Shown here one piece after another: positions 1-26,305 of a stretch of DNA of 64,000 bases. The first letter of the stretch is position 1, and the number at the start of each line of letters is the position of its first letter. Source of the DNA: Paramoeba atlantica (lineage: Eukaryota > Protista > Discosea). The notes under the pieces are model-generated. The model was not told the DNA's origin. It saw nothing but the letters and a program-made list of their open reading frames with translations, and did not search any database. A program made the translations under genes and the position numbers. The DNA is taken from positions 1 through 64,000 of the forward strand of contig CDRNVI010000065.1 of assembly GCA_977017575.1 (NCBI GenBank), in the 5' to 3' direction.

Positions 1-287
1 CCTCACTCTAAGAGGCTGGGCTGATAACCGACTAGGCCCAGTACTCGGAGGACCGTCCCGGACCCTCCCCTCAGGGAACCAGCTCCCTTACCCGGCTTAC
101 ACCTCTTGGGTAAGCCGTGTTGACGTACAGTTCGTCGACGCAGCGTGTTGGCAACAGCACGTTGGTGCCGCCTTGGACAAGCGGAAACTGGTAGAGGACG
201 TCGGCCTCGGAACTTCCAAATCTGTCTGTGAAGGGTCTGGCTTGCCAGTGACCATCCGGAGCAATCCGGAATGATTTGGTTTTTTTT
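1..287 (+). mobile_element. Subfamily A element, 5' end cut by the window edge
   Basis: Matches 5219-5505. Confidence 0.75.
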
Positions 288-529
288 GGAGACTCTACCC
301 TAGCGGCTAGCCCTCCGTGTCTTCTTCTTCTCCTCTCCTTCTTAAGGGAGTCGATAAAAAAATTCAACTGAGGACGAGAGGCCCGATTTTTTAGTCTCAA
401 AACGAAACTCAGTTTTTTATCCCCCTTTTTGTCGAGGGGCAAGGGCCATTTTGCGGGGGGGTTAACATTGTTGTTGGTAGCGGGGTCTTCCTCTGTCGCA
501 GAAAACAGAAAAAACCAACCAGGAGAAAA

Positions 530-1152
530 ATGCAAAAAATACACTTCCAAAGACCGATAAAGAAATGTTACCAAACGAACAAAAGAGATCCATATCTACA
601 GGAGAAGCTCCAAAGAAACTGCGAAAGAGATCACAGAAACAGAAACTGCCAGCTTCAAAACTATCACCAGCATTTTCAACCCCCAAGAAGATGCAAACGA
701 AACGAAAAATGCCAACTCAAGAGATCCAGGAGTTGGAATTATCTAAGGCTTCTGTAAAATATGAAGGAGAAAACAGTGAGTAACCCCCCCAGCCTCCCCC
801 CACCCCATCTCCCCCACCCCCCCGCCAGCATATTGTCCGATTTTATTTCTTTTCTTTTCTGCAAGATGCATTTCGTTTTTTATGTGTTTGATGTTGGTTT
901 GGTTGAAAACTAATTTAGTATACCGTGAAGCTGGTGTACCGCTCGTCTCGCAATTTCAGGTAAGTTGTCTCAAACTAGCTAGGTAGTAACAGTAAAACTA
1001 GCCACGCCCATCTAGGAAGATAAAAAAAAAGCTAGGAAGATAATCACGGCTAATTAACCTAAGGCAACGTTGCGACGATAACCTAACCTAAGTGTGAAAA
1101 TTAGTATGGCAAACAGTTTAACCTCCTTAAATGATCTATATCAGTGTTGTTG
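530..1152 (+). mobile_element. Probable LINE 3' end (basic ORF tail, 3'UTR, (GTT)n tail) in the tandem unit
   Basis: Ends in TTAACCTCCTTAAATGATCTATATCAGTGTTGTTGTT, matching the 3' end of the TSD-flanked insertion at 25128-25714. Confidence 0.55.
781..826 (-). other. G-quadruplex-prone tract in each repeat unit
   Basis: Five C-runs of 4-7 nt on the plus strand. Confidence 0.4.
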
Positions 1153-1605
1153 TTCTTGAAAGAGTCCGTGCTAACCCCCTTGGTGCGACATCCGTCATTA
1201 CGGATTGTGCCGATGATATCGGCTGTCGCATCGAGGGCTGTATCTCTGCGCCAACGAGCGCATGAACATCAAATTGTCGCAGCGACGACGACTTTCTGTA
1301 CCTTGTTCATTTTATTATTAAATAAGACTTTTCATGGCAGCACGGGGGAGCCCCCCCATACGTAGTTTGTCCCCCCCAACCAAAGACGTGGTTTGTCCGC
1401 AAGCTCGGTGTATTCAGGCTCATGATGGTACAGAAGTACCGCCTTCCCGATCGCATCAAGTTTAGGAAGTTCCTATGCTCGGCCTAACGGATTAAGTTTT
1501 TCCACACTTTGGGTTGCAGGTGAGGGGGTAAATTTTGGTTCTTTCTCGCCCATTCGTTTCTTAGTTCATACGTCGTTCATATGGGCAAAACCCCTCTTAT
1601 CGACT

Positions 1606-1765
1606 AAATCCAATACAAATCATTCCGGATTGCTCCAGACGGTCGCTGGCAAGCCAGACCCTTCACAGACAGATTTGGAAGTTCAGAGGCCGACGTCCTC
1701 TACCAGTTTCCGCTTTTCCAAGGCGGCACCAACGTGCTATTGCCAACACGCTGCGTCGACGAACT
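1606..1765 (-). mobile_element. Inverted 3' half of a subfamily A element (also ~6824-6983 and ~11850-12009)
   Basis: Reverse complement of the 3' ~155 nt of the body; lies head-to-head with the plus-strand copy at 1770. Confidence 0.8.
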
Positions 1766-1769
1766 CGAA

Positions 1770-2126
1770 GTGGCAAGAACTCGAAGTTTGAAGCACATGG
1801 TGCTCAGATGGCGAGTTCAAACGCATTTTTCCTGGCGGCTTCACTCTCAGAGGCTGCGCTGAGAACATTCTGGGCCCAGTACTCGGAGGATCGTCCCGGA
1901 CCCTCCGCTAAGGGAACCAGCTCCCTTACCCGGCTTACACCTCTTGGGTAAGCCGTGTTGACGTACAATTCGTCGACGCAGCGTGTTGGCAACAGCACGT
2001 TGGTGCCGCCTTGGAAAAGCGGAAACTGGTAGAGGACGTCGGCCTCGGAACTTCCAAATTTGTCTGTGAAGGGTCTGGCTTGCCAGTGACCGTCCGGAGC
2101 AATCCGGAATGATTTGGTTTTTTTTT
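1770..2126 (+). mobile_element. Subfamily A variant with partial head (also 6988-7344 and 12014-12370)
   Basis: Same body with substitutions (e.g. GCTTC/GAGGC wobble in place of GCCTC/GAGGC); ends in a T run. Confidence 0.75.
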
Positions 2127-2756
2127 GGAGACTCTACCCTAGCGGCTAGCTCTGCAGAGCCATCCGTGTCTTCTTCTTCTTCTTCTTCTTAAGGGGGTGG
2201 ATAAAAAAATTCAAATGATGGCGAGAGGCCCGATTTTTTTTGTCGCAAAACGAAACTCAGTTTTACATGCCCCTTTTTGTCGAGGGGCAAGGGCCCTTTT
2301 TCGGGGGGGATGTAAAATTGAAGAAGAATGCCCGGCGTCTTCACTCTAAGAGGCTGGGCTGATAACCGACTAGGTCAAGTACTCGGAGGACCGTCCCGGA
2401 CCTTCCTATCGGGGAACCAGCTCCCTTACCGGGCTCACACTTCTTGGGTGAGCCGTGTTGGCGTACAATTGGTCGAGGCATAAACCCAAAAAGAAGAAGA
2501 GAAGAATAGAAACCCGACCAACCACCAACCATCACTGGGATAATAAATTAATATGTCCCAGTTGAAAGCTTCACAAATTTCTCCTACCCATAAAACACTT
2601 TGGCGGTCTCCACAAAACTAACATATTCACCAGAAGCTTTTCAAAAACATCTTGCACCAGGCTAAGGGGCGGAGGTCTTGCAAGGGGCGGAGGTGGCGGA
2701 GGGGCAAGAATTCAAAGTTTGAAGCACATGGTGCTCAGACGGCGAGTTTAAACCCG

Positions 2757-3187
2757 CGGTGCTCGCGTAGTTGTTAGACGGTGGGCCTTACAACCTGCAG
2801 GTTGTGGGTTCGATTCCCGCTATCGACAAAACTCGCAACCTGGCGGCCTCACTGCAAAGGGAAAGCGATCAGGAGTGCCTTCAAGGCCCACACCCAACCC
2901 CGCTCCCCTGGAGGACCGGCCCGGAACCGCCGAGCTGAACCAGGCTCCAGCGCAGCCGATAAATTGCGAGATGCTTACGCAAAGGAGGCTTGAGACACAG
3001 CCTACACGATGCAACGGGGTGGACGCCCGTCCTGGTAGCTACGGTTGGGTAGCCGTGCTCGGGCCGCAAGGCGTCGAGTGCCTTCTGGGAAGGGGGTAGC
3101 AACACGATGAAGGTCGGTGGCCTGAGACTCTACCCTAACGGTTGGCGCTGCAGAGCCCTCCGTGTCTTCTTCTTCTTCTTCTTCTTC
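2757..3187 (+). mobile_element. tRNA(Val)-like-headed structured element, subfamily B (also 7975-8405 and 13592-14040)
   Basis: Anticodon-like loop CTTACAA 2787-2793, variable segment AGGTT, T-arm GTGGG-TTCGATT-CCCGC. The body shares CCTGGCGGCCTCACT, GGAGGACCG.CCCGGA, AACCAG and GGGTAGCCGTG with subfamily A. GCC-GCAA-GGC hairpin 3063-3072; (TTC)n tail. Confidence 0.65.
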
Positions 3188-3504
3188 AAACCCGCTCATC
3201 GCAATATCCCCGGCGGCCTCACTCTAAGAGGCTGGGCTGATAACCAACTAGGCCCAGTACTCGGAGGATCGTCCCGGACCCTCCCCTCAGGGAACCAGCT
3301 CCCTTACCCGGCTTACACCTCTTGGGTAAGCCGTGTTGACGTACAATTCGTCGACGCAGCGTGTTGGCAACAGCACGTTGGTGCCGCCTTGGAAAAGCGG
3401 AAACTGGTAGAGGACGTCGGCCTCGGAACTTCCAAATCTGTCTGTGAAGGGCCTGGCTTGCCAGTGACCATCCGGAGCGATCCGGAATGATTTGGATTTT
3501 GGAT
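3188..3504 (+). mobile_element. Subfamily A element lacking box A, abutting an antisense RNase H fragment (also 8406-8647)
   Basis: Starts at AAACCCGCTCATCGC and ends in GATTTGGATTTTGGATT. The minus-strand RNase H reading CKVKSH runs directly into it. Confidence 0.75.
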
Positions 3505-4190
3505 TATGAGATTTAACTTTGCACACATACAAATTAACATTCTGAGATTTTAGTTTCCGCACCTGATGCTCTATATCTTGTAGAATGTTTCTGTTGACGC
3601 TGCCGTCATACCCTATTACCCGTCTTCGAATGCGAACATGATGAAAGAAGTGCCACGCATAGAATGAATCTGTGTGTACTACGATATCTTTTGCTCCGCC
3701 CGGTATTCTTTTAAGCGCCTCTCGGAAAGATTCAGCCTCAGCTTGCTCGGCACTATCAACATCTAGTGTTAAGGAAAAACATTTATCGGTTGTCCACCGT
3801 TGAAGCACAACAATTCCAGCACCTGCTCTGATCTCGTTTGTCACCCGCAAGGCACGGACTGAACCATCAATATAGAAGTGAACCTCACCATCTTTTACTG
3901 GAAGGATCAGAACTTTCTTCGACAAATTGGAAATCGTAAGGCGTATCTTGCTTCAAGGCGTAGGCATGTTTACTTTTCCATCTAGGAGAAGAGAGTCTTT
4001 CGTAATCCGGGAGCGGTTCGAGTGCTACGTGTATGACCCTCGCTTGGCCGAACGAACGGCGAAGAATACAATGTCAAAGCGCTTGGTCCGCCACCGGAAA
4101 GTAGACGGCGAAGTAATTGGACTAGTGACCAGCCTTCTGGAACGGCGATACAGCCAGCAACAGATTAGTGTCACCCTAAACAAGGAGCAA

Positions 4191-4313
4191 AGAGGAAGAA
4201 AGAGGAAGAAAGAGGAAGAAAGAGGAAGAAAGAGGAAGAAAGAGGAAGAAAGAGGAAGAAAGAGGAAGAAAGAGGAAGAAAGAGGAAGAAAGAGGAAGAA
4301 AGAGGAAGAGGAG
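4191..4313 (+). repeat. Polypurine 21-nt-period repeat (AGAGGAAGAA-based) inside the LINE fragment
   Basis: Directly visible; copy 2 (9333-9443) is shorter. Confidence 0.95.
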
Positions 4314-4570
4314 CAGGGGTCGCTCGCGCGACCCCCGCTAAATAGGGGGGGAAGGTGGTAGTTGTGGGGTATGGAGGCCTCTCGCAACTCCGGGGCCTCA
4401 CCGGGAGCACAATTGAGGTTACCTATTTTTTATGTTAACTGTGTGGCAAAATTGTAAATTTTTGGAAGGTGTTGAAATTTTTTTTTAGGGGTCGATTTTT
4501 TTTTAGGGGTTGAAATCTTTTTTAGGCCTTGAAATTTTTTTGAAGGGGTCGACTTCTTTTTAATCGGTTT

Positions 4571-4680
4571 ATGACAGATAAGGGTGCGGCTTATATGACA
4601 GATAAGGGTGCTGTATGACAGATAAGGGTGCGAGTTTCTATGGCAGATAAGGGTGCCGCGTTTATGACAGATAATGGTGC
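4571..4680 (+). repeat. ATGACAGATAAGGGTGC-core minisatellite, about 5 units
   Basis: Directly visible; one more unit in copy 2. A related reverse-strand motif TTATCTGTCAC occurs near 42750. Confidence 0.9.
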
Positions 4681-5126
4681 GAGTGGGTACCTTTAAATCT
4701 TCACGTAACTTTTTCCAGTGATCTCGATCCTGAGCGTATACGAGGGCTTGTTCTTCGGTAATGTCCAGATCGTGAAAGCAAGCTTCGCTTGGTGAGGGAT
4801 TTCGTTTCCTATCGCTGCATTTCCACTGAATAAGATCTCGAAACATGAATGAGTGCCTTAGAATGTGACCAACAATTTTAGCCCGACTAACGCGATGTAC
4901 GGTGGAGAAACGAGGAGTGCCGCAATAAAGTCACTCGATAGTGTAGCAGTGTCAAAACTCGTCCAGTTTAGCACAATTATAGCAAAATCTTCGCATCATA
5001 TTGAGCTCAACTTCTGTTTGCCGAAGCATTATGTTGGATATGGAAAGCGAAGCGGCACCAAAGGTCATGATTGGATAAGCGAGGCAATCAAACAAACGCA
5101 GTTTTGTTGCTGCACTCAGTGACGAG

Positions 5127-5505
5127 GTGGAGGTGGCGGAGTGGCAAGAACTCAAAGTTTGAAGCACATGGTGCTCAGAAGGCGAGTTCAAACCCGCTCA
5201 TCGCAATATTCCCGGCGGCCTCACTCTAAGAGGCTGGGCTGATAACCAACTAGGCCCAGTACTCGGAGGATCGTCCCGGACCCTCCCCTCAGGGAACCAG
5301 CTCCCTTACCCAGCTTAAAACTCTTGGGTAAGCCGTGTTGACGTACAGTTCGTCGACGCAGCGTGTTGGCAACAGCACGTTGGTGCCGCCTTGGACAAGC
5401 GGAAACTGGTAGAGAACGTCGGCCTCGGAACTTCCAAATCTGTCTGTGAAGGGTCTGGCTTGCCAGTGACCATCCGGAGCAATCCGGAATGATTTGGTTT
5501 TTTTT
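5127..5505 (+). mobile_element. tRNA-headed structured SINE-like element, subfamily A (complete copy)
   Basis: Box A TGGCGGAGTGG 5134-5144; box B GTTCAAACC 5186-5194; degenerate acceptor pairing GTGGAGG/TCATCGC; hairpin AGCAC-ATG-GTGCT in the variable-arm position; GCAA-tetraloop hairpins 5359-5382 and 5473-5488; T8 run 5498-5505; many dispersed copies in both orientations. Confidence 0.75.
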
Positions 5506-8500
5506 GGAGACTCTACCCTAGCGGCTAGCCCTCCGTGTCTTCTTCTTCTCCTCTCCTTCTTAAGGGAGTCGATAAAAAAATTCAACTGAGGACGAGAGGC
5601 CCGATTTTTTAGTCTCAAAACGAAACTCAGTTTTTTATCCCCCTTTTTGTCGAGGGGCAAGGGCCATTTTGCGGGGGGGTTAACATTGTTGTTGGTAGCG
5701 GGGTCTTCCTCTGTCGCAGAAAACAGAAAAAACCAACCAGGAGAAAAATGCAAAAAATACACTTCCAAAGACCGATAAAGAAATGTTACCAAACGAACAA
5801 AAGAGATCCATATCTACAGGAGAAGCTCCAAAGAAACTGCGAAAGAGATCACAGAAACAGAAACTGCCAGCTTCAAAACTATCACCAGCATTTTCAACCC
5901 CCAAGAAGATGCAAACGAAACGAAAAATGCCAACTCAAGAGATCCAGGAGTTGGAATTATCTAAGGCTTCTGTAAAATATGAAGGAGAAAACAGTGAGTA
6001 ACCCCCCAAGCCTCCCCCCACCCCATCTCCCCCACCCCCCCGCCAGCATATTGTCCGATTTTATTTCTTTTCTTTTCTGCAAGATGCATTTCGTTTTTTA
6101 TGTGTTTGATGTTGGTTTGGTTGAAAACTAATTTAGTATACCGTGAAGCTGGTGTACCGCTCGTCTCGCAATTTCAGGTAAGTTGTCTCAAACTAGCTAG
6201 GTAGTAACAGTAAAACTAGCCACGCCCATCTAGGAAGATAAAAAAAAAGCTAGGAAGATAATCACGGCTAATTAACCTAAGGCAACGTTGCGACGATAAC
6301 CTAACCTAAGTGTGAAAATTAGTATGGCAAACAGTTTAACCTCCTTAAATGATCTATATCAGTGTTGTTGTTCTTGAAAGAGTCCGTGCTAACCCCCTTG
6401 GTGCGACATCCGTCATTACGGATTGTGCCGATGATATCGGCTGTCGCATCGAGGGCTGTATCTCTGCGCCAACGAGCGCATGAACATCAAATTGTCGCAG
6501 CGACGACGACTTTCTGTACCTTGTTCATTTTATTATTAAATAAGACTTTTCATGGCAGCACGGGGGAGCCCCCCCATACGTAGTTTGTCCCCCCCAACCA
6601 AAGACGTGGTTTGTCCGCAAGCTAGGTGTATTCAGGCTCATGATGGTACAGAAGTACCGCCTTCCCGATCGCATCAAGTTTAGGAAGTTCCTATGCTCGG
6701 CCTAACGGATTAAGTTTTTCCACACTTTGGGTTGCAGGTGAGGGGGTAAATTTTGGTTCTTTCTCGCCCATTCGTTTCTTAGTTCATACGTCGTTCATAT
6801 GGGCAAAACCCCTCTTATCGACTAAATCCAATACAAATCATTCCGGATTGCTCCAGACGGTCGCTGGCAAGCCAGACCCTTCACAGACAGATTTGGAAGT
6901 TCAGAGGCCGACGTCCTCTACCAGTTTCCGCTTTTCCATGGCGGCACCAACGTGCTATTGCCAACACGCTGCGTCGACGAACTCGAAGTGGCAAGAACTC
7001 GAAGTTTGAAGCACATGGTGCTCAGATGGCGAGTTCAAACGCATTTTTCCTGGCGGCTTCACTCTCAGAGGCTGCGCTGAGAACATTCTGGGCCCAGTAC
7101 TCGGAGGATCGTCCCGGACCCTCCGCTAAGGGAACCAGCTCCCTTACCCGGCTTACACCTCTTGGGTAAGCCGTGTTGACGTACAATTCGTCGACGCAGC
7201 GTGTTGGCAACAGCACGTTGGTGCCGCCTTGGAAAAGCGGAAACTGGTAGAGGACGTCGGCCTCGGAACTTCCAAATTTGTCTGTGAAGGGTCTGGCTTG
7301 CCAGTGACCGTCCGGAGCAATCCGGAATGATTTGGTTTTTTTTTGGAGACTCTACCCTAGCGGCTAGCTCTGCAGAGCCATCCGTGTCTTCTTCTTCTTC
7401 TTCTTCTTAAGGGGGTGGATAAAAAAATTCAAATGATGGCGAGAGGCCCGATTTTTTTTGTCGCAAAACGAAACTCAGTTTTACATGCCCCTTTTTGTCG
7501 AGGGGCAAGGGCCCTTTTTCGGGGGGGATGTAAAATTGAAGAAGAATGCCCGGCGTCTTCACTCTAAGAGGCTGGGCTGATAACCGACTAGGTCAAGTAC
7601 TCGGAGGACCGTCCCGGACCTTCCTATCGGGGAACCAGCTCCCTTACCGGGCTCACACTTCTTGGGTGAGCCGTGTTGGCGTACAATTGGTCGAGGCATA
7701 AACCCAAAAAGAAGAAGAGAAGAATAGAAACCCGACCAACCACCAACCATCACTGGGATAATAAATTAATATGTCCCAGTTGAAAGCTTCACAAATTTCT
7801 CCTACCCATAAAACACTTTGGCGGTCTCCACAAAACTAACATATTCACCAGAAGCTTTTCAAAAACATCTTGCACCAGGCTAAGGGGCGGAGGTCTTGCA
7901 AGGGGCGGAGGTGGCGGAGGGGCAAGAATTCAAAGTTTGAAGCACATGGTGCTCAGACGGCGAGTTTAAACCCGCAGTGCTCGCGTAGTTGTTAGACGGT
8001 GGGCCTTACAACCTGCAGGTTGTGGGTTCGATTCCCGCTATCGACAAAACTCGCAACCTGGCGGCCTCACTGCAAAGGGAAAGCGATCAGGAGTGCCTTC
8101 AAGGCCCACACCCAACCCCGCTCCCCTGGAGGACCGACCCGGAACCGCCGAGCTGAACCAGGCTCCAGCGCAGCCGATAAATTGCGAGATGCTTACGCAA
8201 AGGAGGCTTGAGACACAGCCTACACGATGCAACGGGGTGGACGCCCGTCCTGGTAGCTACGGTTGGGTAGCCGTGCTCGGGCCGCAAGGCGTCGAGTGCC
8301 GTCTGGGAAGGGGGTAGCAACACGATGAAGGTCGGTGGCCTGAGACTCTACCCTAACGGTTGGCGCTGCAGAGCCCTCCGTGTCTTCTTCTTCTTCTTCT
8401 TCTTCAAACCCGCTCATCGCAATATCCCCGGCGGCCTCACTCTAAGAGGCTGGGCTGATAACCAACTAGGCCCAGTACTCGGAGGATCGTCCCGGACCCT

Positions 8501-10279
8501 CCCCTCAGGGAACCAGCTCCCTTACCCGGCTTACACCTCTTGGGTAAGCCGTGTTGACGTACAATTCGTCGACGCAGCGTGTTGGCAACAGCACGTTGGT
8601 GCCGCCTTGGACATCCGGAGCGATCCGGAATGATTTGGATTTTGGATTATGAGATTTAACTTTGCACACATACAAATTAACATTCTGAGATTTTAGTTTC
8701 CGCACCTGATGCTCTATATCTTGTAGAATGTTTCTGTTGACGCTGCCGTCATACCCTATTACCCGTCTTCGAATGCGAACATGATGAAAGAAGTGCCACG
8801 CATAGAATGAATCTGTGTGTACTACGATATCTTTTGCTCCGCCCGGTATTCTTTTAAGCGCCTCTCGGAAAGATTCAGCCTCAGCTTGCTCGGCACTATC
8901 AACATCTAGTGTTAAGGAAAAACATTTATCGGTTGTCCACCGTTGAAGCACAACAATTCCAGCACCTGCTCTGATCTCGTTTGTCACCCGCAAGGCACGG
9001 ACTGAACCATCAATATAGAAGTGAACCTCACCATCTTTTACTGGAAGGATCAGAACTTTCTTCGACAAATTGGAAATCGTAAGGCGTATCTTGCTTCAAG
9101 GCGTAGGCATGTTTACTTTTCCATCTAGGAGAAGAGAGTCTTTCGTAATCCGGGAGCGGTTCGAGTGCTACGTGTATGACCCTCGCTTGGCCGAACGAAC
9201 GGCGAAGAATACAATGTCAAAGCGCTTGGTCCGCCACCGGAAAGTAGACGGCGAAGTAATTGGACTAGTGACCAGCCTTCTGGAACGGCGATACAGCCAG
9301 CAACAGATTAGTGTCACCCTAAACAAGGAGCAAAGAGGAAGAAAGAGGAAGAAAGAGGAAGAAAGAGGAAGAAAGAGGAAGAAAGAGGAAGAAAGAGGAA
9401 GAAAGAGGAAGAAAGAGGAAGAAAGAGGAAGAAAGAGGAAGAGGAGCAGGGGTCGCTCGCGCGACCCCCGCTAAATAGGGGGGGAAGGTGGTAGTTGTGG
9501 GGTATGGAGGCCTCTCGCAACTCCGGGGCCTCACCGGGAGCACAATTGAGGTTACCTATTTTTTATGTTAACTGTGTGGCAAAATTGTAAATTTTTGGAA
9601 GGTGTTGAAATTTTTTTTTAGGGGTCGATTTTTTTTTAGGGGTTGAAATTTTTTTTAGGCCTTGAAATTTTTTTGAAGGGGTCGACTTCTTTTTAATCGG
9701 TTTATGACAGATAAGGGTGCGGCTTATATGACAGATAAGGGTGCATTATGACAGACAAGGGTGCTGTATGACAGATAAGGGTGCGAGTTTCTATGGCAGA
9801 TAAGGGTGCCGCGTTTATGACAGATAATGGTGCGAGTGGGTACCTTTAAATCTTCACGTAACTTTTTCCAGTGATCTCGATCCTGAGCGTATACGAGGGC
9901 TTGTTCTTCGGTAATGTCCAGATCGTGAAAGCAAGCTTCGCTTGGTGAGGGATTTCGTTTCCTATCGCTGCATTTCCACTGAATAAGATCTCGAAACATG
10001 AATGAGTGCCTTAGAATGTGACCAACAATTTTAGCCCGACTAACGCGATGTACGGTGGAGAAACGAGGAGTGCCGCAATAAAGTCACTCGATAGTGTAGC
10101 AGTGTCAAAACTCGTCCAGTTTAGCACAATTATAGCAAAATCTTCGCATCATATTGAGCTCAACTTCTGTTTGCCGAAGCATTATGTTGGATATGGAAAG
10201 CGAAGCGGCACCAAAGGTCATGATTGGATAAGCGAGGCAATCAAACAAACGCAGTTTTGTTGCTGCACTCAGTGACGAG

Positions 10280-10658
10280 GTGGAGGTGGCGGAGTGGCAA
10301 GAACTCAAAGTTTGAAGCACATGGTGCTCAGAAGGCGAGTTCAAACCCGCTCATCGCAATATTCCCGGCGGCCTCACTCTAAGAGGCTGGGCTGATAACC
10401 AACTAGGCCCAGTACTCGGAGGATCGTCCCGGACCCTCCCCTCAGGGAACCAGCTCCCTTACCCAGCTTAAAACTCTTGGGTAAGCCGTGTTGACGTACA
10501 GTTCGTCGACGCAGCGTGTTGGCAACAGCACGTTGGTGCCGCCTTGGACAAGCGGAAACTGGTAGAGAACGTCGGCCTCGGAACTTCCAAATCTGTCTGT
10601 GAAGGGTCTGGCTTGCCAGTGACCATCCGGAGCAATCCGGAATGATTTGGTTTTTTTT
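10280..10658 (+). mobile_element. Subfamily A SINE-like element, complete copy in the next repeat unit
   Basis: Near-identical to 5127-5505 at offset 5153. Confidence 0.75.
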
Positions 10659-13600
10659 GGAGACTCTACCCTAGCGGCTAGCCCTCCGTGTCTTCTTCTT
10701 CTCCTCTCCTTCTTAAGGGAGTCGATAAAAAAATTCAACTGAGGACGAGAGGCCCGATTTTTTAGTCTCAAAACGAAACTCAGTTTTTTATCCCCCTTTT
10801 TGTCGAGGGGCAAGGGCCATTTTGCGGGGGGGTTAACATTGTTGTTGGTAGCGGGGTCTTCCTCTGTCGCAGAAAACAGAAAAAACCAACCAGGAGAAAA
10901 ATGCAAAAAATACACTTCCAAAGACCGATAAAGAAATGTTACCAAACGAACAAAAGAGATCCATATCTACAGGAGAAGCTCCAAAGAAACTGCGAAAGAG
11001 ATCACAGAAACAGAAACTGCCAGCTTCAAAACTATCACCAGCATTTTCAACCCCCAAGAAGATGCAAACGAAACGAAAAATGCCAACTCAAGAGATCCAG
11101 GAGTTGGAATTATCTAAGGCTTCTGTAAAATATGAAGGAGAAAACAGTGAGTAACCCCCCAAGCCTCCCCCCACCCCATCTCCCCCACCCCCCCGCCAGC
11201 ATATTGTCCGATTTTATTTCTTTTCTTTTCTGCAAGATGCATTTCGTTTTTTATGTGTTTGATGTTGGTTTGGTTGAAAACTAATTTAGTATACCGTGAA
11301 GCTGGTGTACCGCTCGTCTCGCAATTTCAGGTAAGTTATCTCAAACTAGCTCGGTAGTGACAGTAAAACTAGCCACGCCCAGCTAGGAAGATAAAAAAAA
11401 AGCTAGGAAGATAATCACGGCTAATTAACCTAAGGCAACGTTGCGACGATAACCTAACCTAAGTGTGAAAATTAGTATGGCAAACAGTTTAACCTCCTTA
11501 AATGATCTATATCAGTGTTGTTGTTCTTGAAAGAGTCCGTGCTAACCCCCTTGGTGCGACATCCGTCATTACGGATTGTGCCGATGATATCGGCTGTCGC
11601 ATCGAGGGCTTTATCTCTGCGCCAACGAGCGCATGAACATCAAATTGTCGCAGCGACGACGACTTTCTGTACCTTGTTCATTTTATTATTAAATAAGACT
11701 TTTCATGGTAGCACGGGGGAGCCCCCCCATACGTAGTTTGTCCCCCCCAACCAAAGACGTGGTTTGTCCGCAAGCTAGGTGTATTCAGGCTCATGATGGT
11801 ACAGAAGTACCGCCTTCCCGATCGCATCAAGTTTAGGAAGTTATCGACTAAATCCAATACAAATCATTCCGGATTGCTCCAGACTTTCGCTGGCAAGCCA
11901 GACCCTTCACAGACAGATTTGGAAGTTCAGAGGCCGACGTCCTCTACCAGTTTCCGCTTTTCCAAGGCGGCACCAACGTGCTATTGCCAACACGCTGCGT
12001 CGACGAACTCGAAGTGGCAAGAACTCGAAGTTTGAAGCACATGGTGCTCAGATGGCGAGTTCAAACGCATTTTTCCTGGCGGCTTCACTCTCAGAGGCTG
12101 CGCTGAGAACATTCTGGGCCCAGTACTCGGAGGATCGTCCCGGACCCTCCGCTAAGGGAACCAGCTCCCTTACCCGGCTTACACCTCTTGGGTAAGCCGT
12201 GTTGACGTACAATTCGTCGACGCAGCGTGTTGGCAACAGCACGTTGGTGCCGCCGTGGAAAAGCGGAAACTGGTAGAGGACGTCGGCCTCGGAACTTCCA
12301 AATCTGTCTGTGAAGGGTCTGGCTTGCCAGTGACCGTCCGGAGCAATCCGGAATGATTTGGTTTTTTTTTGGAGACTCTACCCTAGCGGCTAGCTCTGCA
12401 GAGCCATCCGTGTCTTCTTCTTCTTCTTCTTCTTAAGGGGGTGGATAAAAAAATTCAAATGATGGCGAGAGGCCCGATTTTTTTTGTCGCAAAACGAAAC
12501 TCAGTTTTACATGCCCCTTTTTGTCGAGGGGCAAGGGCCCTTTTTCGGGGGGGATGTAAAATTGAAGAAGAATGCCCGGCGTCTTCACTCTAAGAGGCTG
12601 GGCTGATAACCGACTAGGTCAAGTACTCGGAGGACCGTCCCGGACCTTCCTATCGGGGAACCAGCTCCCTTACCGGGCTCACACTTCTTGGGTGAGCCGT
12701 GTTGGCGTACAATTGGTCGAGGCATAAACCCAAAAAGAAGAAGAGAAGAATAGAAACCCGACCAACCACCAACCATCACTGGGATAATAAATTGGTCATG
12801 ATCATACGCTCGTGGCGCAGAGATACGTCTCTCTGTGTGACGGCCGATACCATCGGCGCATGACCCGCATACGACGGGTGTCACACAGAGAGTGGAGTGC
12901 GAGGTAGGAGACGAGACGCCCATCGGTCATGCTACAACACGTATAGCCATGGTTCATGCTGCAACACGGTCAAGCCGTGGGTTCATGCTGTCAGATGCAT
13001 CATGGGGAGGTCCGTTACCGCCGCACTCGCTACAGCATGTAGGGAGAGAGGGGTGCAAGTTCGCATCCCCTATACACGCATACAACGTGTCCTCCCGCTG
13101 TAGCACGCCCAGTGGTCCTCAAGGGAGGCCACCATGGCGCATAGCTCCCGGGAGAAGAAAGCACGAGAAGTAGAGAGCCGGGGAGGGAAGAAAGCTCACT
13201 CGAAGAGAGCGAGCCGGGGAGGGGTGAAGAGTGCGAAGTGCGCCCCTACTTCCGCGACAAAGAGGGACAGTTCCAGCTAACCGTCAGCCGGAAACGGGCA
13301 TTTAAAAGTAAGAATATGCCCGTTTCCGGGAAAAGAAAGGAAGGGCTAGCAAAATGTACCAACAAGGTACAGAAACTGTATCTTTATATGTCCCAGTTGA
13401 AAGCTTCACAAATTTCTCCTACCCATAAAACACTTTGGCGGTCTCCACAAAACTAACATATTCACCAGAAGCTTTTCAAAAACATCTTGCACCAGGCTAA
13501 GGGGCGGAGGTCTTGCAAGGGGCGGAGGTGGCGGAGGGGCAAGAATTCAAAGTTTGAAGCACATGGTGCTCAGACGGCGAGTTTAAACCCGCGGTGCTCG

Positions 13601-14040
13601 CGTAGTTGTTAGACGGTGGGCCTTACAACCTGCAGGTTGTGGGTTCGATTCCCGCTATCGACAAAACTCGCAACCTGGCGGCCTCACTGCAAAGGGAAAG
13701 CGATCAGGAGTGCCTTCAAGGCCCACACCCAACCCCGCTCCCCTGGAGGACCGACCCGGAACCGCCGAGCTGAACCAGGCTCCAGCGCAGCCGATAAATT
13801 GCGAGCTGCTTACGCAAAGGAGGCTTGAGACACAGCCTACACGATGCAACGGGGTGGACGCCCGTCTTGGTAGCTACGGTTGGGTAGCCGTGCTCGGGCC
13901 GCAAGGCGTCGAGTGCCGTCTGGGAAGGGGGTAGCAACACGATGAAGGTCGGTGGCCTGAGACTCTACCCTAACGGTTGGCGCTGCAGAGCCCTCCGTGT
14001 CTTCTTCTTCTTCTTCTTCTTCTTCTTCTTCTTCTTCTGT

Positions 14041-16490
14041 TCAGAACATGCGATCAAGGGGGGTATGAGGGGGGTATCATTTCTTTGGTGTTCGTAATAC
14101 TTTGTTAGTGCGCGATCTATCGTCTTTCCCTTGACGCTTTTCTGTCTTTTTGACGCAGATCTCTCTTTTAGCGAGTGTTTTTTGACGTGACCCCTTTGGG
14201 CCCAGACTTTCATAGCTTGGATCGTCATTCTACTGGTATAACTGATTACTCCTCCTTCTTTGCGGAGCTCTAAATTTAACCCGATCACTAATAACAATGT
14301 CAAAGACCGTTCGTTCCAGACCACACAAGTTTCGCAAGGTGCGCCATGGATTTGCCTGGTTTTTGCGAAGTCCTCTTTCGGTGTCTCCGCACTCTTCGGC
14401 AATACATTGTTCAATTGCTTTCCTGTGCTGCATTACTAAAGAGTTAAAACTCTTTGGATTTCGACTCCAGGAGAAAAGATCTCGCAGCCCTCGGATTGGA
14501 CGATCATTTGAGGGATTCTCAAATTGATTCGCAGATTTCGAAGAATCTTCTTGGCTAGCTTTTTTTATTATATTCCATTACTTTATGCGGTTTGTGTGCT
14601 CTAGTATTGGAGGCACAAAAACTCTGAATTTGGAGGTGATAGAGATGGAAGTGTTTGATGTGAAAGTGCTAAGTATTTTAGCCGACTTTGTCGGTATTTT
14701 GGATTGGATTGGATTGGATCTTGGCTAGCTGATTTGATGCCCTTTGCAGCAGAGAGAATACATACCGACAGCGTATCCCATGAGGCTTTCTCTTCGCAGC
14801 CCTCCAAATATTGATGAGTTTTTTGGGTAAACAATTTTCGTTGCGTTTCATCTCGAAGTTGGTACCAGGGGGTCGCGCTGGATGCTCCCGCCGAAGTGCT
14901 TCGCCACTTAATCTTAATCCGCGCAAACACAGGGAGCTGGTTCGTGGGAATAGGGGCATTGAGAACCTTGTGCCGCCAGATTGCGGAGGCAAATCTGGAC
15001 GAAATTGTAACGTGATCTAGCTGTCGTTCCTTCTTGTCTGGTAATACTCACGTCCGGTTGCGGCTGCTGGGGCAAAGGCTGTGCGCAGATTTACGCACAA
15101 TCGAGCATAAAAGCCCACGAAATCTAGCAACCTCTGGGGGATCTAAACGTTTGTTCGTTACGAGCGTTAATGGCGAATTAAAATCCCCCATGACGACGCG
15201 GGTTACTGGCCTGTAATTGTTGACGCAGAGAAGTCAGTTCTCCGTAAAACGCGGTCAAAACATCTTCAGAAGAATCAAGGAGAAGAATCAAGAATTAAAG
15301 GAGCGTAGACATTAACCAGTGTTCCGACACCATCTTCCATCGGAAAGTGCGCGGCCATGATTCGCTCGCTAACTTTCCAGACCTTATTAAGCGGTTCAAT
15401 ACTCACTATTGCCATACCGTTATACGAATCCGTGGGGGCAGCTGATAAAAGATACAGATAATAACAGGTTTCCGAGTCATAGACTTTTCGACGAATTATC
15501 TCCTTGCTTTCAACCTTGGAAAAACTGTATCGCGTCTCCTGCATACAAAGAATGTGCACACCCTTCTGCGTCATCCAGTGCAGAACCTTATGCAGATGAG
15601 CTGATTTTCGGAGCGCAAACTCGTCGTCCCCATCCAACCTAAGCGTAGTAGTGTTGAGTGTTCCTATATTCAGTGTTCCCTTCTCAGCGGAACCTCGAAG
15701 GTTCTCCGAATCGCGATGAGCGCGTTTGCCGGACAATGCCCATTTATATTTGCGACTTCTCCGCCTTTCCCGCGATCGATGGGTACCAGAGGAGCAAAGA
15801 CGTGCAGCGCAAAGAACTATACGCGGGTCCCGAGGAGGAAAAGGTAAGGTGTCAGACGGTCGCTGCGCATAACGAACTCGCCATCTGAAACAGAAAAGGA
15901 ACATCCGCACCCCTTTGCTCCACCATCCCCTCCCAGAGATTGAATTCCCGTGCATAGGAATATCTCCACACCACAGCAATCCGTGAACCTCGGTACATCA
16001 TCTTCGTTAATTGTGACAGAGAATTCGCACGGAGTTTTGCGAGTCCATTTCTATACCTTTTGGGCTGGAAAAGGGCCCCCCGACCAAGCGTGGACCGCAG
16101 AAGGAGGCTCATGACTTCACTTGCTTCATGCGGGCCGGACGCGTCCGTCATTTTTTGAGAGTAACAAAAAACGTTGGCCCAGGAGCGCTCATGGATGGAG
16201 AAACGAAAATTTTTACGCCTTCCTTCCTCCGGGGGATGGGGTGGGATTAAACCACTTCTAGCACGAATGCCGTTCCACCTCCACCGAGGGGGAAAGGTTA
16301 GCGCGCTCGCTAACGACATGTATGCCTCGGCGACGGGTTGCCACGCCGTCTTTGCCCCAGAACGCGGTTAACGACGCCGAGAACGAGGGTAAAACAGGAT
16401 TAGGAAGGGACAATTCCCTCTTGCTAGCTCGAAAATCCTTACGTCGGAAGGCTGGAGTTCGCCACGCCCCACCACCGGCAACGGTCCAAT
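14041..16490 (-). pseudogene. Degenerate APE-containing LINE, 3'-truncated before the RT domain
   Basis: MTDASGPHEASEVMSLL, IGTLNTTTL, CMQETRY, VNVYAP and NQANPWRTLR are homologous to 18172-19900; several frameshifts and deletions. Confidence 0.9.
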
Positions 16491-16492
16491 GC

Positions 16493-16873
16493 CGGAGGTG
16501 GCGGAGTCGCCAAGAATTCAAAGTTTGAAGCACATGGTGCTCAGACGGAGAGTTCAAACCCGCTCATCGCAATATTCCCGGCGGCCTCACTCTAAGAGGC
16601 TGGGCTGATAACCGGCTAGGCCCAGTACTCGGAGGACCGTCCCGGACCCTCCCCTCAGGGAACTAGCTCCCTTACCCAGCTTAAAACTCTTGGGTAAGCC
16701 GTGTTGACGTGCAGTTCGTCGACGCAGCGTGTTGGCAATAGCACGTTGGTGCCGCCTTGGAAAAGCGGAAACTGGTAGAGGACGTCGGCCTCTGAACTTC
16801 CAAATCTGTCTGTGAAGGGTCTGGCTTGCCAGCGACCGTCTGGAGCAACCCGGAATGATTTGGATTTGGATTT
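16493..16873 (+). mobile_element. Subfamily A element outside the tandem array
   Basis: Same head and body, ends in GATTTGGATTTGGATTT; divergent from the 5' end of the minus-strand LINE relic. Confidence 0.75.
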
Positions 16874-17558: not shown

Positions 17559-17785
17559 AAAGCAACTTAACTGACAGGGCTCGCCAAAGGATCCGCCAGG
17601 CTGGACACGCGAACTTCTTATACCGCTCCTAGGTGGCCAGGGTATCGTTGCCTTGGATAGCTACAGCAGTGCTGCGAAACCCCCGAGACGCTCAGCTACG
17701 GGACGTCTTAACCAGCTCCACTCTGACCTTGCTGCTCAAGGAGGGCCTTTCCTTAGAAGGATCACCAGCCTGCCGACCTATAGCA

Positions 17786-18161
17786 ATCGAGTTTTTTGTA
17801 AAGATCGAGTTTTTTGTAAAGATCGAGCTTTTGTAAAGATCGAGTTTTTTGTAAAGATCGAGTTTTTTGTAAAGATAGAGTTTTTTGTAAAGATCGAGTT
17901 TTTTGTAAAGATCGAGTTTTTTGTAAAGATCGAGTTTTTTGTAAAGATCGAGTTTTTTGTAAAGATCGAGTTTTTTGTAAAGATCGAGTTTTTTGTAAAG
18001 ATCGAGTTTTTTGTAAAGATCGAGGTTTTTGTAAAGATCGAGTTTTTTGTAAAGATCGAGTTTTTTGTAAAGATCGAGTTTTTTGTAAAGATCGAGGTTT
18101 TTGTAAAGATCGAGTTTTTTGTAAAGATCGAGTTTTTTGTAAAGATCGAGTTTTTTGTAAA
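17786..18161 (+). repeat. 18-nt minisatellite (ATCGAGTTTTTTGTAAAG), about 21 units, in the LINE 5'UTR
   Basis: Directly visible; ends 10 nt before the ATG at 18172. Confidence 0.97.
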
Positions 18162-18171
18162 TATTCGCAAA

Positions 18172-21100
18172 ATGGCGGATGCGTCCGGTGTGTGTGAGGC
18201 CACGACCATCATGAATCTTCTTGCGCATTCCACGCTCGATCGGGGGGTTTTGTTTCGTCCTGCAGAGGGCGGGGCAGAATCTGCCAAACTCCGCGTAAAA
18301 TCGTTGCGACAAATTATGCGGGGCTTGCAGTTAGGTGGTGAGCTGGCGGTGGTATGGAGGTACGCGAATTCATCGCACTACAGCGTGTGGGAGGGGGTTG
18401 TAGAGTGCCGGATGCTGAACCACTGGCGTATTCGCTATGTTCAGTGTCCGCGGTTTACGCTGCCATTTCCACCATGTAGTCCTCACATCGTCCTTCGTGC
18501 TGTTCGCCTGTTCGTTCCTAACAGTTGGCGTCGCAGGAAAAAGCGGTTTCGCAAACCGAGAGCTCAGTCCGGCAAACGGGATCTCCGTGACTCGGTGGGT
18601 CCTAGAGACCCCGCTGTGAAGAGGATGCTTAGCGTTGGAACCTTAAATGTAACTACTCTGAAGCTGAAGGGTGAGGATGAGTTTAGTGTACGAAAGTGTG
18701 GGCACCTTTATGAAGTAATTAATTTTATGGATACGAAGGGAATACATATCTTAGGCTTACAGGAAACGCGGTACAGATTTTCTCCTTCCGAAAAGTTGGA
18801 TGTACTCTACCGTAAAGTGCGCTACCGGAATACGGATTATCACTTAAACCTCGTTACAGCACGGGCAAGGGATGCATACAACGGTATGGGTTTCGTCAGC
18901 ACTCTTCCTTTGACTAAGGTTTCTAAGATCAGTGAAAGGATAATGTCTGGGGAATTTGAGATGGAGGATGGAGTCGGTGCAGTTGTCAATGTTTATTCTC
19001 CTACAAGGGACGCGTCAGACGTCGAGATAAAAAAGTTTTATGGTGAATTAGAGCGTTGTTGTCTGGTAGTGCGAGAAAACAATTCACGTCGTCCTCTCAT
19101 AGTCATAGGAGACTTCAACGCACCGCTAACGCACATAACTAATAAGGAACAGGATCCACTTGCAGCCGCACGACTCAAAGGTCTATCATGTTCCATAGAT
19201 TGCAAATCTGCACATAGCCTTTGCCCAAGCAGCCGGAAGTGGACGTGTGAATTACCAAACAAAGCTCTGAGGCAATTAGATCACATTTTCATTTGTAGCA
19301 GATTCGCATCGGCAATTCAAAGACACAAAGTGATTAAAGCACCTATTCCTACCACTCATTGTTGTGTCATTGCGAGTATCAGGATAAAGTGGCGAGTTAC
19401 TGCCCATAAGTCGAATAATAATCAGCTTTCGTGGTTTCTTCTTCGAAACAGTGATATTAGAACGGAATTCGTCAAAAACGTTCACTGTCAGCGCTTAGCG
19501 AATGCTGAGTCAGGAGCGACATGGGGAGAACTTGCAAAATGTATGGTGAGTGCTGTGAAAACCTTTAAAAAACCTTCGAAACGAACCGCGAATAAGGAAT
19601 CGGTAAAGGACTTTAAGATACACGACTTGCGCGGTTTATATCAAAAAAGCAGAAATAAAACCACATTCAATGCGCTATTAAGAGAGCATAAGGAAGAAAT
19701 TGAAGAAACTATTTCAAACGAATGCGTCGAGATTGAAAATCAACTTCGTAAAAATCATGCGAATCCGTGGAGAACTATTCGGCAAATTTGTGGGCGGTAT
19801 AGAGACACATTTAACACAAGCGGGGGCTCACGAAACAAGAAGCTACAAGAAATTCGAAATCACTTCATGCGGTTCAGTGGTTATGACTCGGGAAATCCGG
19901 ATATTAGCTTCGAGATGCTTCCGCCACCGCTCGTTCCAATTTCAGACGAACCATTTAGGGGCGAGGAATTGATCACTTCTTTGTCTCTTTTCAAGAAAGG
20001 AAAAACTCCAGGAAGTGACGGGATACCAATGGAAGCCATACAGGCAATATCAGGGCACCCAGATCTCAGATTACAACTCCTAGAAATCATAAACGAAGTC
20101 CATGCAACGGGGGTTACTGAGGAAGCTTGGCGAATCACGCTACAGATACCCATTCCAAAAAAGGGAGATTTAACAAAGATCGAAAATTGGAGGCCCATAT
20201 GCGTGGTAAACAGTATAGTGAAACTTATGAACCATATGATACTTTCCCGCATTAGGCCTAACATAGAAAAATCTCTTCGGGATAACCAATATGGTTTTCG
20301 ACCCAACCGACTTTCGATCCAACCGCTACTGTAGGCGCCCAGATCATCATGAACGAAGTCAAAACTAAAGGATTCAGAGGAGAAGGCCTTTCGGTAGCCC
20401 ACATAGATTTCGCGAAAGCTTTTCCCTCGGTTTCCTTCGCAGCGATAAAAGCTAGCTTAGATGCATTCCGTGTGGGACCTTGTCTATTCAGAACTATCAT
20501 GTCAATATACAGTAATTTGAAAGGCACCGTTCGAACTCAGCTTGGCACTACCAAACCTTTCCCTATTGCAACGGGCATACTTCAAGGCGACGTCTTAGCG
20601 CCTTATCTTTTTGTAATGGTATTGGATCGTATTTTGAACAAAGCACTAGACGACAATTCCGACGGTGTTCTTTTAAGTTCGAGAGGTACTAGGAAAAGGG
20701 GTCCTTATGAAAAACGCCTCACTGATATTGACTATGCAGACGATATAGCATTGTTTAGCGACACAAAAAGCGGATTAAACAATATGATAGACAATGTAGC
20801 CACAGAAGCCAGCAAAGCAAATCTACAGCTAGCCATTGGTGTAACGAAGACAGCCTGACTAACGTTCGGAAAATCAACAAAGAACAGTGACAACATTCAA
20901 AGCAATGTTGTCGGGAGCATTCCGAAAGTTCAAACATACAAACACTTAGGGCATCACCAGGAAAACGACTTTACATCAACAATGAAGGAACGTTTAAAGT
21001 TGGCTTGGGGTTCTCTTTTTCGCTTGAACGGGATTTGGCCGTCGTCTTTGAGTGCAGGGACAAAGCTCAGACTATACGATTCCCTTGTTTATCCGGTGTT

Positions 21101-22268
21101 AAATTTCGGAACGGGGGCCCTCTCAATATCGCAAACAATGCTCCGACGAATTGACGTTGAGGTAAATAATATGAGGAGAATTGCATGTCAATGCGACAAA
21201 TTGGATGAATATGGGATGTGTTACCCGAATGCATCTTTATATCTTGGCACGGAGAAATTTTCAACAATTCACAGGGTACAAAGAGCTAAGCTTGTTGGAC
21301 ACATGCTTCGTCACTCATCTGATTTCCAAGAGCTCGTCAAGTGGAAACAGCGGACCAACGCACGACAACCTTCCCCAAGCGAGGCTTGCTTGAAGGATTT
21401 GTACATCACCCTTGAATAAGCCTTGGTGTATGCAACTGACCGCGAACATTGGTATCAACTAACCGAAAAGTTGCGAAGAGAGCTCGAGCCTATTATTCAA
21501 TATGAAAAGTGCGGGCCCGTTAGATGTAAAAATGCCCTGGCAAGGGCGAAAAAACACAAAAGTCCTTCCGAGTTACAATTCGTTGAGGAGTCAGACATCC
21601 CTTTTCCAGCATATAAAACTATGCAAATTCATACAGACGGTTCAGTATTGCCGATGCGGGGCACGGATGAAATTCGAAGCGGTATCGGAGTTGTAGTATT
21701 AAAACCTAGATTAAAACCTCTACGAATATCTGTGCCTCTAGAATCTGAAACAATTGAGCGAGTCGAAATAATGGCCTTTCAGCAGGCCTTGCGTCAGCTC
21801 CCGGAAAAACTTTGCGCATGTCTTTTTCATACAGATTCGTACTATCTTTGGGAATTTTTTCACATTCTTCGTCATCAGAGGCGCATTGTTGGATATAAGG
21901 GGATCACAAACGGAGATTTATTTTATGAACTTGACAGAAAACTCCGTGAACTAAAACATGAATCATTTTCAATTTTTATGTGCAAGGTAAAGAGTCATTG
22001 TGGGAACAAATGGAATGAGGAGGCGGATGGGTTGGCACTCATGGCAGCACGAAAAATATCTCGACCTCCTGTACAGAAAAGGAGAAAGACAAGTGAAGAC
22101 ACCGAGGAGTCTCAGACAGACAAATCTTTGCAAAATCTGATTAAAAATAGAGCCTTAGAAAAGGGAAAGGCGAAAACTTTGCTAGCACCCAAGCGCGGGG
22201 CTGAGGCAAAAGGGAGACCCCGAGGGAAAGTAGCGAGAACTGGTGGCAAGAGGAAGCCCTCTGAGTAG
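18172..22268 (+). pseudogene. Full-length non-LTR retrotransposon ORF (N-terminal domain, APE endonuclease, RT, RNase H), disrupted
   Basis: APE: VGTLNV, GLQETR, VNVYSP, IGDFNA, LDHIF. RT: IPKKGDL..NWRPI, QYGFRP, DFAKAF, LQGDVLAPYLF, YADD, YKHLG. RNase H: TDGS, ERVEIMA, TDS, KVKSH, NEEAD. Frameshift near 20310-20335; in-frame TGA 20856-20858 and TAA 21417-21419. Confidence 0.95.
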
Positions 22269-25922: not shown

Positions 25923-26305
25923 AAAAAAAATCCAAATCATTCCTGATTGCTCCGGATGGTCACTGGCAAGCCCGAACCTTCACAGACAGATTTGGAAGTT
26001 CCGAGGCCGACGTCCTCTACCAGTTTCCGCCTGTCCAAGGCGGCACCAACGTGCTATTGCCAACACGCTGCGTCGACGAATTGTACGTCAACACGGCTCA
26101 CCCAAGAGGTGTAAGCCGGGTAAGGGAGCTGGTTCCCTGAGGGGAGGGTCCGGGACGGTCCTCCGAGTGAAGCCGCCAGGAATATTGCGATGAGCGGGTT
26201 TGAACTCGCTGTCTGAGCACCATGTGCTTGAAACTTTGAATTCTTGCCACTCCTCCACCTCCTTGCCACTCCGCCACCTCCTTGCCACTCCGCCACCTCC
26301 TCCCC
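25923..26305 (-). mobile_element. Subfamily A element, minus strand, internally deleted, with duplicated box A motifs
   Basis: Reverse complement of the body at 25927-26250; GGAGGTGGCGGAGTGGCAA repeated at ~26245-26305. Confidence 0.75.

Follow-up and report, generated by a model that had tools for sequence, protein, structure and literature searches.

SINE1, a tRNA-headed short retroposon with a plausible LINE partner in the DNA of a probable euglenozoan

The repeat at 5127-5505 and its copies

The DNA under study is a stretch of 64,000 nucleotides (contig CDRNVI010000065.1 of assembly GCA_977017575.1, filed under Paramoeba atlantica; here called the window), and the feature of interest is a repeat on its plus strand at positions 5127-5505. 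The repeat opens with a 79-nt tRNA-like head, continues with a body that folds into hairpins, and closes with a 3'-terminal hairpin, a spacer and a T-rich tail. It is one full-length copy (copy E) of a discrete non-autonomous retroposon of ~377 nt, termed SINE1, an abundant and recently active short interspersed element (SINE). SINE1 is non-coding, with stops in all frames, and its minus strand carries an open frame of ~94 codons.

Further copies were collected through the proteins that have been called on them. Because gene callers put open reading frames (ORFs) across the SINE1 minus strand, a protein search with the minus-strand frame matched eight called 'proteins', and spurious ORFs of 100-165 aa are already present on this strand in public data. 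The ORF of a neighbouring long interspersed element (LINE) served as a second protein query and returned related LINE proteins. The matched proteins led to contigs of a single ENA assembly, which make up nine loci (L001-L009), and the SINE1 copies on them are 90-97% identical to the window copy; their source is the same organism as that of the window or a very close one.

A BLAST search of the window and the nine loci, ~208 kb altogether, gave 29 full-length matches that represent 22 independent copies, starting at query positions 1-12 and ending at 364-379. Copies elsewhere start at the equivalent of 5127-5129 and end at that of 5501-5505, and contigs of public sequencing runs break at 5126 and ~5500. 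Since full-length copies start and end at matching points, the limits proposed in the initial annotation of this DNA are those of the repeat itself. Over the SINE1 body, the contig depth summed to ~40-250x that of the flanks in two runs, which is a rough guide rather than a copy number and suggests hundreds of copies in the genome.

The copies bear the marks of retroposition. Target-site duplications of 11-14 nt, with one mismatch allowed, flank 11 of the 22 copies, and most of them immediately adjoin the 5' end; overall, insertions are marked by duplications of 9-14 nt. In a control that paired left and right flanks from different copies, the longest repeat was 11 nt and repeats of at least 9 nt occurred in 8% of comparisons. 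Truncated copies that keep the 3' part start at positions 35, 42, 165, 221, 306 and 346, and it is because these copies lose the 5' part and keep the 3' part that the head can be taken as the 5' end and the T-rich end as the 3' end. The tail differs among copies, reading GGA followed by 2-18 T and often repeated. The reading of the repeat as a SINE, already made from the single sequence, thus has good support. SINE1 is a discrete unit found at dispersed sites, with target-site duplications around it and a 5' truncation in some copies; its head is related to a tRNA, contains A and B boxes and begins at tRNA position +1.

The claim that the window holds more than 15 copies in both orientations was partly upheld. 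There are 20 BLAST matches in the window; many of these are tandem duplicates, however, and since bases 1 to ~14000 consist of a 5.2-kb tandem unit repeated ~2.7 times, only ~8 pieces are independent. The tandem units at 1-14000 are 99% alike and contain LINE fragments on the minus strand (for example 4691-5104 and 3503-4022) dotted with SINE1 copies and with copies of a second SINE family, termed sub2. A microsatellite, (AAAGAGGAAG)12, lies at 4189-4309 and 9332-9442 and shows enormous contig depth in all runs, including the RNA-labelled one and those of a second organism.

Apart from copy E, the window holds a full-length, 95% identical copy on the plus strand at 16492-16871 (copy F), just upstream of a degenerate LINE, and an 85% identical copy with an internal deletion on the minus strand at 25924-26264 (copy G), which has duplicated 5' head pieces upstream. 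Copy B (1766-2125, plus strand) lacks its first 10 nt, abuts an inverted partial copy at 1616-1765 and recurs in the tandem array at 6984 and 12010. Copies B and E have a common right flank up to 5679 and are therefore related by segmental duplication. Fragment C (2328-2480, plus strand) is the equivalent of 5208-5360 at 86% identity. An older SINE1-like subfamily, 83-87% identical, was seen on the minus strand of L003 at 590-1060 and 13780-14260; it has a different sequence before the B box and is interrupted by another insertion.

Copy D (2686-3505, plus strand) is split into a head (2686-2757) and a body (3188-3505) by an insertion of sub2 at 2758-3187, also on the plus strand, which has a (TTC)8 tail and a target duplication of 7-8 bp, AAACCCG(C). 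The reverse nesting, SINE1 inside sub2, was found on L003 at ~5745-6123, so that each family has inserted into the other. The sub2 head is tRNA-like and different from the SINE1 head; its best model is the D-arm-less mascRNA (E 0.067), and it has a good T arm. The plus-strand segment adjoining copy E at 5507-5561 is not SINE1 but a sub2-type 3' fragment, which matches sub2 367-429, ends in ...CCGTGTC(TTC)n and has a contig depth 20-40x below that of the SINE1 body. The sub2 tail, ...CCGTGTC(TTC)n, implies a probable LINE partner other than that of SINE1.

The tRNA-like head

The head occupies 5127-5205 on the plus strand and is a degenerate tRNA-like unit. An acceptor-like stem is formed by 5127-5133 and 5198-5204, with six of seven pairs (three of them G-U), and is followed by a discriminator A at 5205; position 2 is C or T among the copies and either can pair with G5203. 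The RNA polymerase III (Pol III) A box, TGGCGGAGTGG, is perfect at 5134-5144 (11/11 matches), and the B box with the T loop, GAGTTCAAACC, is present with tRNA-like spacing and matches ~10/11 when read at 5184-5194. The variable-arm hairpin GCAC-ATG-GTGC is present as described earlier. When the A box and B box were combined into one pattern, 17 matches were found on both strands of the 208 kb, all of them SINE1 heads.

The identity of the parent tRNA is a different matter. The initial annotation had placed TGA in the anticodon position. ARAGORN at an 80% threshold reads the window copy as a 79-nt 'tRNA-Phe(GAA)' at exactly 5127-5205, with four of five T-stem pairs and poor D and anticodon stems. 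With a T loop of 6 nt and little left of the D and anticodon stems, the tRNA species is not assignable. For alignment, consensus and pairing counts a set of 26 copies was used, and their consensus passes ARAGORN at 90% stringency over nt 1-79, as did 1 of 2000 shuffled sequences. The Rfam tRNA model was also aligned to a near-consensus copy (L006 3366-3444), where model positions 1-71 of 71 cover exactly the first 79 nt as the only match. From these sequence features we conclude that the head is tRNA-related and has kept its promoter boxes.

If the boxes are functional, Pol III would start at tRNA position +1, read through a body free of T4 runs and stop in the T-rich tail, which may thus double as a terminator. 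The SINE1 consensus has no T4 run before position 373. It could be, however, that the tRNA likeness is coincidental or non-functional and that SINE1 arose by retroposition of trans-spliced or Pol II read-through transcripts and has no Pol III promoter. Such an origin would agree with the fact that neither Rfam nor ARAGORN at default settings calls a tRNA. It sits poorly with the perfect A box, the tRNA-spaced B box and the acceptor pairing, all of which begin exactly at the 5' end of the element, and with the single pass among 2000 shuffles. Moreover, the spliced-leader sequence is not seen at any SINE1 5' end, and an internal T4 run is absent from both families with a tRNA-like head, SINE1 and sub2. 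A coincidental resemblance is therefore considered unlikely, and a tRNA-derived head is preferred.

Body structure and the ribozyme proposal

Directly behind the head, the plus-strand segment 5211-5225 (block 1, CCYGGCGGCCTCACT) matches sub2 at 14 of 15 positions and is collinear with a second common segment at 5265-5286 (block 2, GGAGGAYCGTCCCGGACCCTCC); in SINE1 numbering the two blocks are positions 85-99 and 139-160. Block 1 contains the CCCGG strand (5211-5215) that can, as noted before, pair with CTGGG (5234-5238) around CCTC-ACTCTAA-GAGG. The inner hairpin, (G)CCTC-ACTCTAA-GAGG(C), lies at 5219-5233, appears in local RNAfold structures and is 97-98% paired across copies; informative covariation across copies was not found for it. 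A hairpin CTGGGC...GCCCAG at 5234-5259 appears in minimum-energy folds, is 96.6% paired and competes for the CTGGG strand. Block 2 forms the GGAGG/CCTCC hairpin (5265-5269 with 5282-5286), and a GGGA/TCCC stem follows (5292-5295 with 5302-5305); both stems had been correctly described. The same holds for the two GCAA-loop hairpins and the final T8 run (5498-5505): the internal hairpin GTGTTG-GCAA-CAGCAC at 5363-5378 is 99% paired across copies, and the 3'-terminal hairpin TCCGGA-GCAA-TCCGGA at 5473-5488 has 6 bp and is 98.7% paired. The spacer, AATGATTT, and tail complete the element at 5489-5505, with GG then T8 in this copy and a variable GGA-T(n) elsewhere. All these features are on the plus strand.

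The plus strand of SINE1 folds at -147.6 kcal/mol (z = -3.25; none of 100 shuffles equal), and the minus strand gives z = -1.68. SINE1 is thus moderately more structured than expected; sub2, with z = 0.01, is not more structured than expected. In an RNAalifold prediction from the 26 copies, none of 88 pairs carried a compensatory change and the covariation term was +1.37. Such a test has almost no power here, given copies that are 90-97% identical and for the most part inert from the moment of insertion. Variation among copies consists mostly of single transitions. In one copy (L008 1232-1610) the pair 5222-5230 is changed on both sides, from C-G to U-A, and about one such event is expected by chance. 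The initial annotation had held that variants among copies keep G-U wobbles that pair only on the plus strand; with 0/88 compensatory pairs, the pattern is indistinguishable from neutral decay of dead copies.

The same annotation had proposed that an HDV-like (hepatitis delta virus-like) self-cleaving ribozyme lies behind the head, with P1 formed by 5211-5215 and 5234-5238, P3 by 5219-5222 and 5230-5233, and a cut near 5210/5211. The nested pairing does exist, being 96-98% paired across copies, and pair 5213-5236 is U-G instead of C-G in half of them. The block at 5211-5225 is conserved in sub2 directly behind a different tRNA-like head, the SINE1 fragment at 2331-2480 begins at the equivalent of 5211, and HDV-like ribozymes are known to be flexible in sequence (PMC4035085). 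Against this, the models of known ribozymes did not recognise the segment. Rfam, which includes HDV-family models, gave no match for the window at the gathering score; with lax filters and E <= 10, the 231 nt at 5115-5345 and the 701 nt at 5000-5700 gave only noise, with neither a tRNA nor an HDV-family or other ribozyme among the matches. A permissive and unspecific scan for the HDV topology, which matches shuffled sequences as often, found 9 sites in the element with a loose descriptor compared with 8.9 +/- 4.3 in shuffles. No model at 5211 was obtained with canonical sizes (P1 of at least 6 bp, P2 of at least 4 bp, P1.1 of at least 1 bp), and one was obtained only if P1 was reduced to 5 bp and P2 to 3 bp. 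The nested double pseudoknot with P1, P1.1, P2, P3 and a J4/2 cytosine is therefore reached only by relaxed models, at the rate expected by chance. In addition, L3 (ACTCTAA) contains no G, so the C and T next to the 3' strand of the five-pair P1 have no Watson-Crick partner there and are unable to form P1.1.

In the folds, the proposed P1 and P3 together amount to a plain hairpin of -10.7 kcal/mol, which gives way to stronger helices: once 60 nt are transcribed, the GGCCUC hairpin together with CUGGGC/GCCCAG wins at -16.9 kcal/mol, and in the full element GGCGGC pairs over a long range with GCCGCC at 5385-5390. In sub2, 8 nt lie between the 3' strands of 'P3' and 'P1', and the motif is therefore not HDV-like in that family. 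The claimed kinship of P3 to the Pr77 hallmark of trypanosomatid elements was not borne out. The query consisted of L1Tc residues 27-77, rebuilt from primers printed in PMC3185411 (residues 1-26 were not compared), and its best local match to SINE1 was a 7-mer, equalled in 750 of 1000 shuffles; moreover, the SINE1 motif is internal and not 5'-terminal. Head and body are joined in 22 of 22 full-length copies, and the points at which truncated copies start show no clustering at position 85 (5211). Rfam, the topology scan, the Pr77 comparison, the folds and the structure of the copies are thus all without support for the proposal, which is considered extremely unlikely, and among these computational tests there is no evidence that any SINE1 part would cleave itself.

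It could still be that the head is separated from the body by other means, if they are separated at all, namely by the tRNA-processing proteins RNase P and RNase Z, as for mascRNA. An acceptor stem, a T arm and a discriminator A are still present in the SINE1 head, mascRNA is the best-aligning model for the sub2 head, and an RNase Z cut would be expected at ~5205/5206, near the site proposed for the ribozyme. The stems are imperfect, however, and retroposed copies retain the head, so that processing of this kind is regarded as improbable. Another reading of the block conserved behind two tRNA-like heads (CCYGGCGGCCUCAC... with its enclosing stem) is that it is a functional RNA module, maybe an unconventional self-cleaving or processing element; we give this a very slim chance. 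If it were true, the module would free a tRNA-like small RNA from the SINE body, and the SINE, besides being mobile, would produce tRNA-like RNAs. On the preferred view, the body of SINE1 is a set of ordinary hairpins.

The 3' end, a candidate LINE partner and the host

An intact LINE was located on the minus strand of L008 at 3024-7616. It has a single ORF of 1530 aa with Exo_endo_phos, RVT_1 and RNase_H domains and is flanked by the target-site duplication AGATTATAT. At the 3' end of its RNA, ACCGAU-GCAA-AUCGGU is followed by a 6-nt spacer and (GGATA)n; in SINE1 the corresponding part consists of a 6-bp hairpin with a GCAA loop, a spacer of 7-8 nt and GGA-T(n). Four LINE copies end in a GCAA-loop hairpin followed by (GGATA)n, namely the L008 element, two near-identical copies and a copy on L002 with 61% protein identity, whose 3' stem has one mismatch. 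The SINE1 and LINE stems have CCG/CGG in common, and the other three of the six pairs differ on both sides and all still pair. A strict motif (GCAA enclosed by a 5-bp stem without mismatch, with two GGAT units shortly after it) was matched 13 times in the ~208 kb, always at a SINE1 or LINE 3' end. From two or three independent occurrences of the hairpin and repeat, we infer that this LINE family may mobilise SINE1 through them. The LINE reverse transcriptase would recognise the end of SINE1 RNA, that is, the GCAA hairpin (5473-5488, the proposed recognition element), the spacer and GGA-T(n), and would copy the RNA into nicked DNA.

A related but degenerate LINE lies in the window itself at 17653-22268 on the plus strand, where Pfam matches and tblastn detected endonuclease, reverse transcriptase and RNase H regions interrupted by frameshifts. 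Its position behind copy F raises another explanation, in which SINE1 is the 5' module of the LINE and an internally deleted derivative of it, like RIME from ingi or NARTc from L1Tc. Copy F lies 0.8 kb upstream of the LINE ORF, and the 175 nt after copy F also follow the inverted partial copy at 1439-1765. The LINE 5' end, however, as defined by the target-site duplication and by comparison of five copies, lies ~35 nt before the ATG (...TTTTTTGTAA...) and begins without SINE1 sequence, and a Pr77-like start is absent from the LINEs. In eleven solitary copies, SINE1 is immediately bounded on either side by a target-site duplication of its own, and it has no sequence similarity to the 4.7-kb LINE. 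A SINE1 derived from the LINE in this way is scarcely credible on these data, and once the LINE 5' ends had been defined, SINE1 was rejected as the start of the neighbouring LINE; a separate SINE with a LINE partner is preferred.

Two further observations concern the 5' ends of these elements. Duplicated 5'-terminal head pieces occur at several SINE1 copies (window 26265-26300, L009 near 8730 and L006 near 5697), and an 18-nt unit (ATCGAGTTTTTTGTAAAG) similar to the 5'-terminal motif of the LINE before its ATG is repeated 21 times in tandem at window 17786-18161. Together, the head pieces and the array may reflect template switching at the 5' ends of RNAs.

The host of these elements is probably a spliced-leader-bearing euglenozoan, a relative of the kinetoplastids, as judged from its sequences. 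A spliced-leader motif of the kinetoplastid/diplonemid type is present: a spliced-leader-like sequence, ...GATACAGTTTCTGTACCTTGTTG followed by GTACATTTT, was found on the minus strand at ~50623 of the window and at ~6543 of L006, the window match lying inside the span of an ORF with an ENTH domain. The best named relative of a kinesin is that of Perkinsela (39% identity), followed by diplonemids and euglenids. The ENA assembly of L001-L009 also encodes Helitron-like proteins (Helitron_like_N with PIF1), DDE_Tnp_4 proteins of the Harbinger type, DDE_3 proteins of the Tc1/mariner type and DDE proteins of the IS1595 type. DNA-transposon protein loci lie at L004 12229-16104 and 19739-20420, L009 8915-9739, L002 4818-5837 and L005 13860-14657, and this set is far richer than that known from trypanosomatids.

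Taken together, we regard it as highly probable that SINE1 is a SINE with a decayed tRNA head, a euglenozoan host, a LINE partner and a body of ordinary hairpins with no evidence of a ribozyme. Note, however, that several results weigh against this view. With its default settings, ARAGORN calls no tRNA in the window; the Rfam tRNA match at L006 3366-3444 scores 10.9 bits, below the gathering threshold of 29, with an E value of 9.6; and the 208 kb contain no native tRNA genes, so there are none for comparison with the head. Pol III transcription of SINE1 is something that we infer, with the lack of a T4 run before the tail as its sole indirect support. A tiny RNA-labelled run (X6) yielded a 239-nt contig with a 47-nt head-like stretch (window 5133-5179, 5 differences). 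The stretch spans the A box to the variable hairpin, has unrelated sequence on both sides, and may come from another family or from the parent gene. SINE1 and the 4.7-kb LINE have no sequence in common beyond CCG/CGG, GCAA and the GGAT repeat, and the link between the partners therefore rests on a short structural motif. Copy E itself has no recognisable target-site duplication and adjoins LINE debris that is rearranged and tandemly duplicated. Finally, the same 175 nt follow copy F and the inverted partial copy at 1439-1765, upstream of the LINE, and this common flank hints that some SINE1 copies travel inside larger units.

SINE1 resembles several known systems in part. Pairs of a SINE and a 'stringent' LINE of the type of eel UnaSINE1/UnaL2 (PMC3531059, PMC5786205) likewise have a SINE head that is related to a tRNA and contains A and B boxes, a non-coding body, a 3' hairpin and short tandem repeat resembling the end of the resident LINE, target-site duplications, 5' truncations and a high copy number. 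Unlike those pairs, SINE1 and its LINE have a 3' part that is only a structural look-alike (the CCG/CGG stem base, GCAA and a GGAT-type repeat), the SINE1 tail is a T-rich GGA-T(n), and the host is euglenozoan. The combination of different heads with common central blocks in SINE1 and sub2 recalls the CORE-SINE, V-SINE, DeuSINE and MetaSINE superfamilies (PMC4824008, PMC4758252), but here the blocks are short (15 and 22 nt) and come from one genome so far.

Among trypanosomatids, only four clades of retrotransposons have been identified according to a 2025 survey, and the short non-autonomous elements are all deletion derivatives of ingi/L1Tc (PMC12278014). RIME, NARTc and SIDER (PMC12278014) of kinetoplastid genomes are, like SINE1, short non-coding retroposons, and they are mobilised, as SINE1 would be, by a LINE that encodes an endonuclease, a reverse transcriptase and RNase H. 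They begin with Pr77 and end in poly(A), whereas SINE1 has a tRNA-like head, no poly(A) and no similarity to Pr77 over residues 27-77. The ribozyme L1TcRz/Pr77 (PMC3185411, PMC4035085) has, as SINE1 does, a C-rich strand (CCCGGC...) able to pair around a small hairpin, and theta ribozymes adjoin phage tRNAs (PMC10879173) much as the SINE1 motif adjoins a tRNA-like unit. L1TcRz, however, occupies the extreme 5' terminus of its element and cuts the element free of the RNA that precedes it, while the SINE1 motif is internal; unlike in L1TcRz and theta ribozymes, P1.1 and P2 are not assignable in SINE1, and there is neither a model match nor sequence similarity. No tRNA-derived SINE from kinetoplastids or Euglenozoa was found in the full-text literature searched, the coverage of which is incomplete.

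SINE1 is thus a true SINE with a tRNA head; its host is unusual and its proposed LINE partner plausible. The family should be masked in annotation, as spurious minus-strand ORFs are already in public data. For the study of retroposition, SINE1 and the LINE would form a simple system in which to follow template choice by a LINE reverse transcriptase, the candidate signal being a 6-bp GCAA hairpin and a GGAT-type repeat. A classical SINE with head, body and tail and with a Pol III-type head, active beside a LINE whose 3' end combines a hairpin with a repeat, would mean that a relative of the trypanosomatids has a much broader repertoire of mobile elements.

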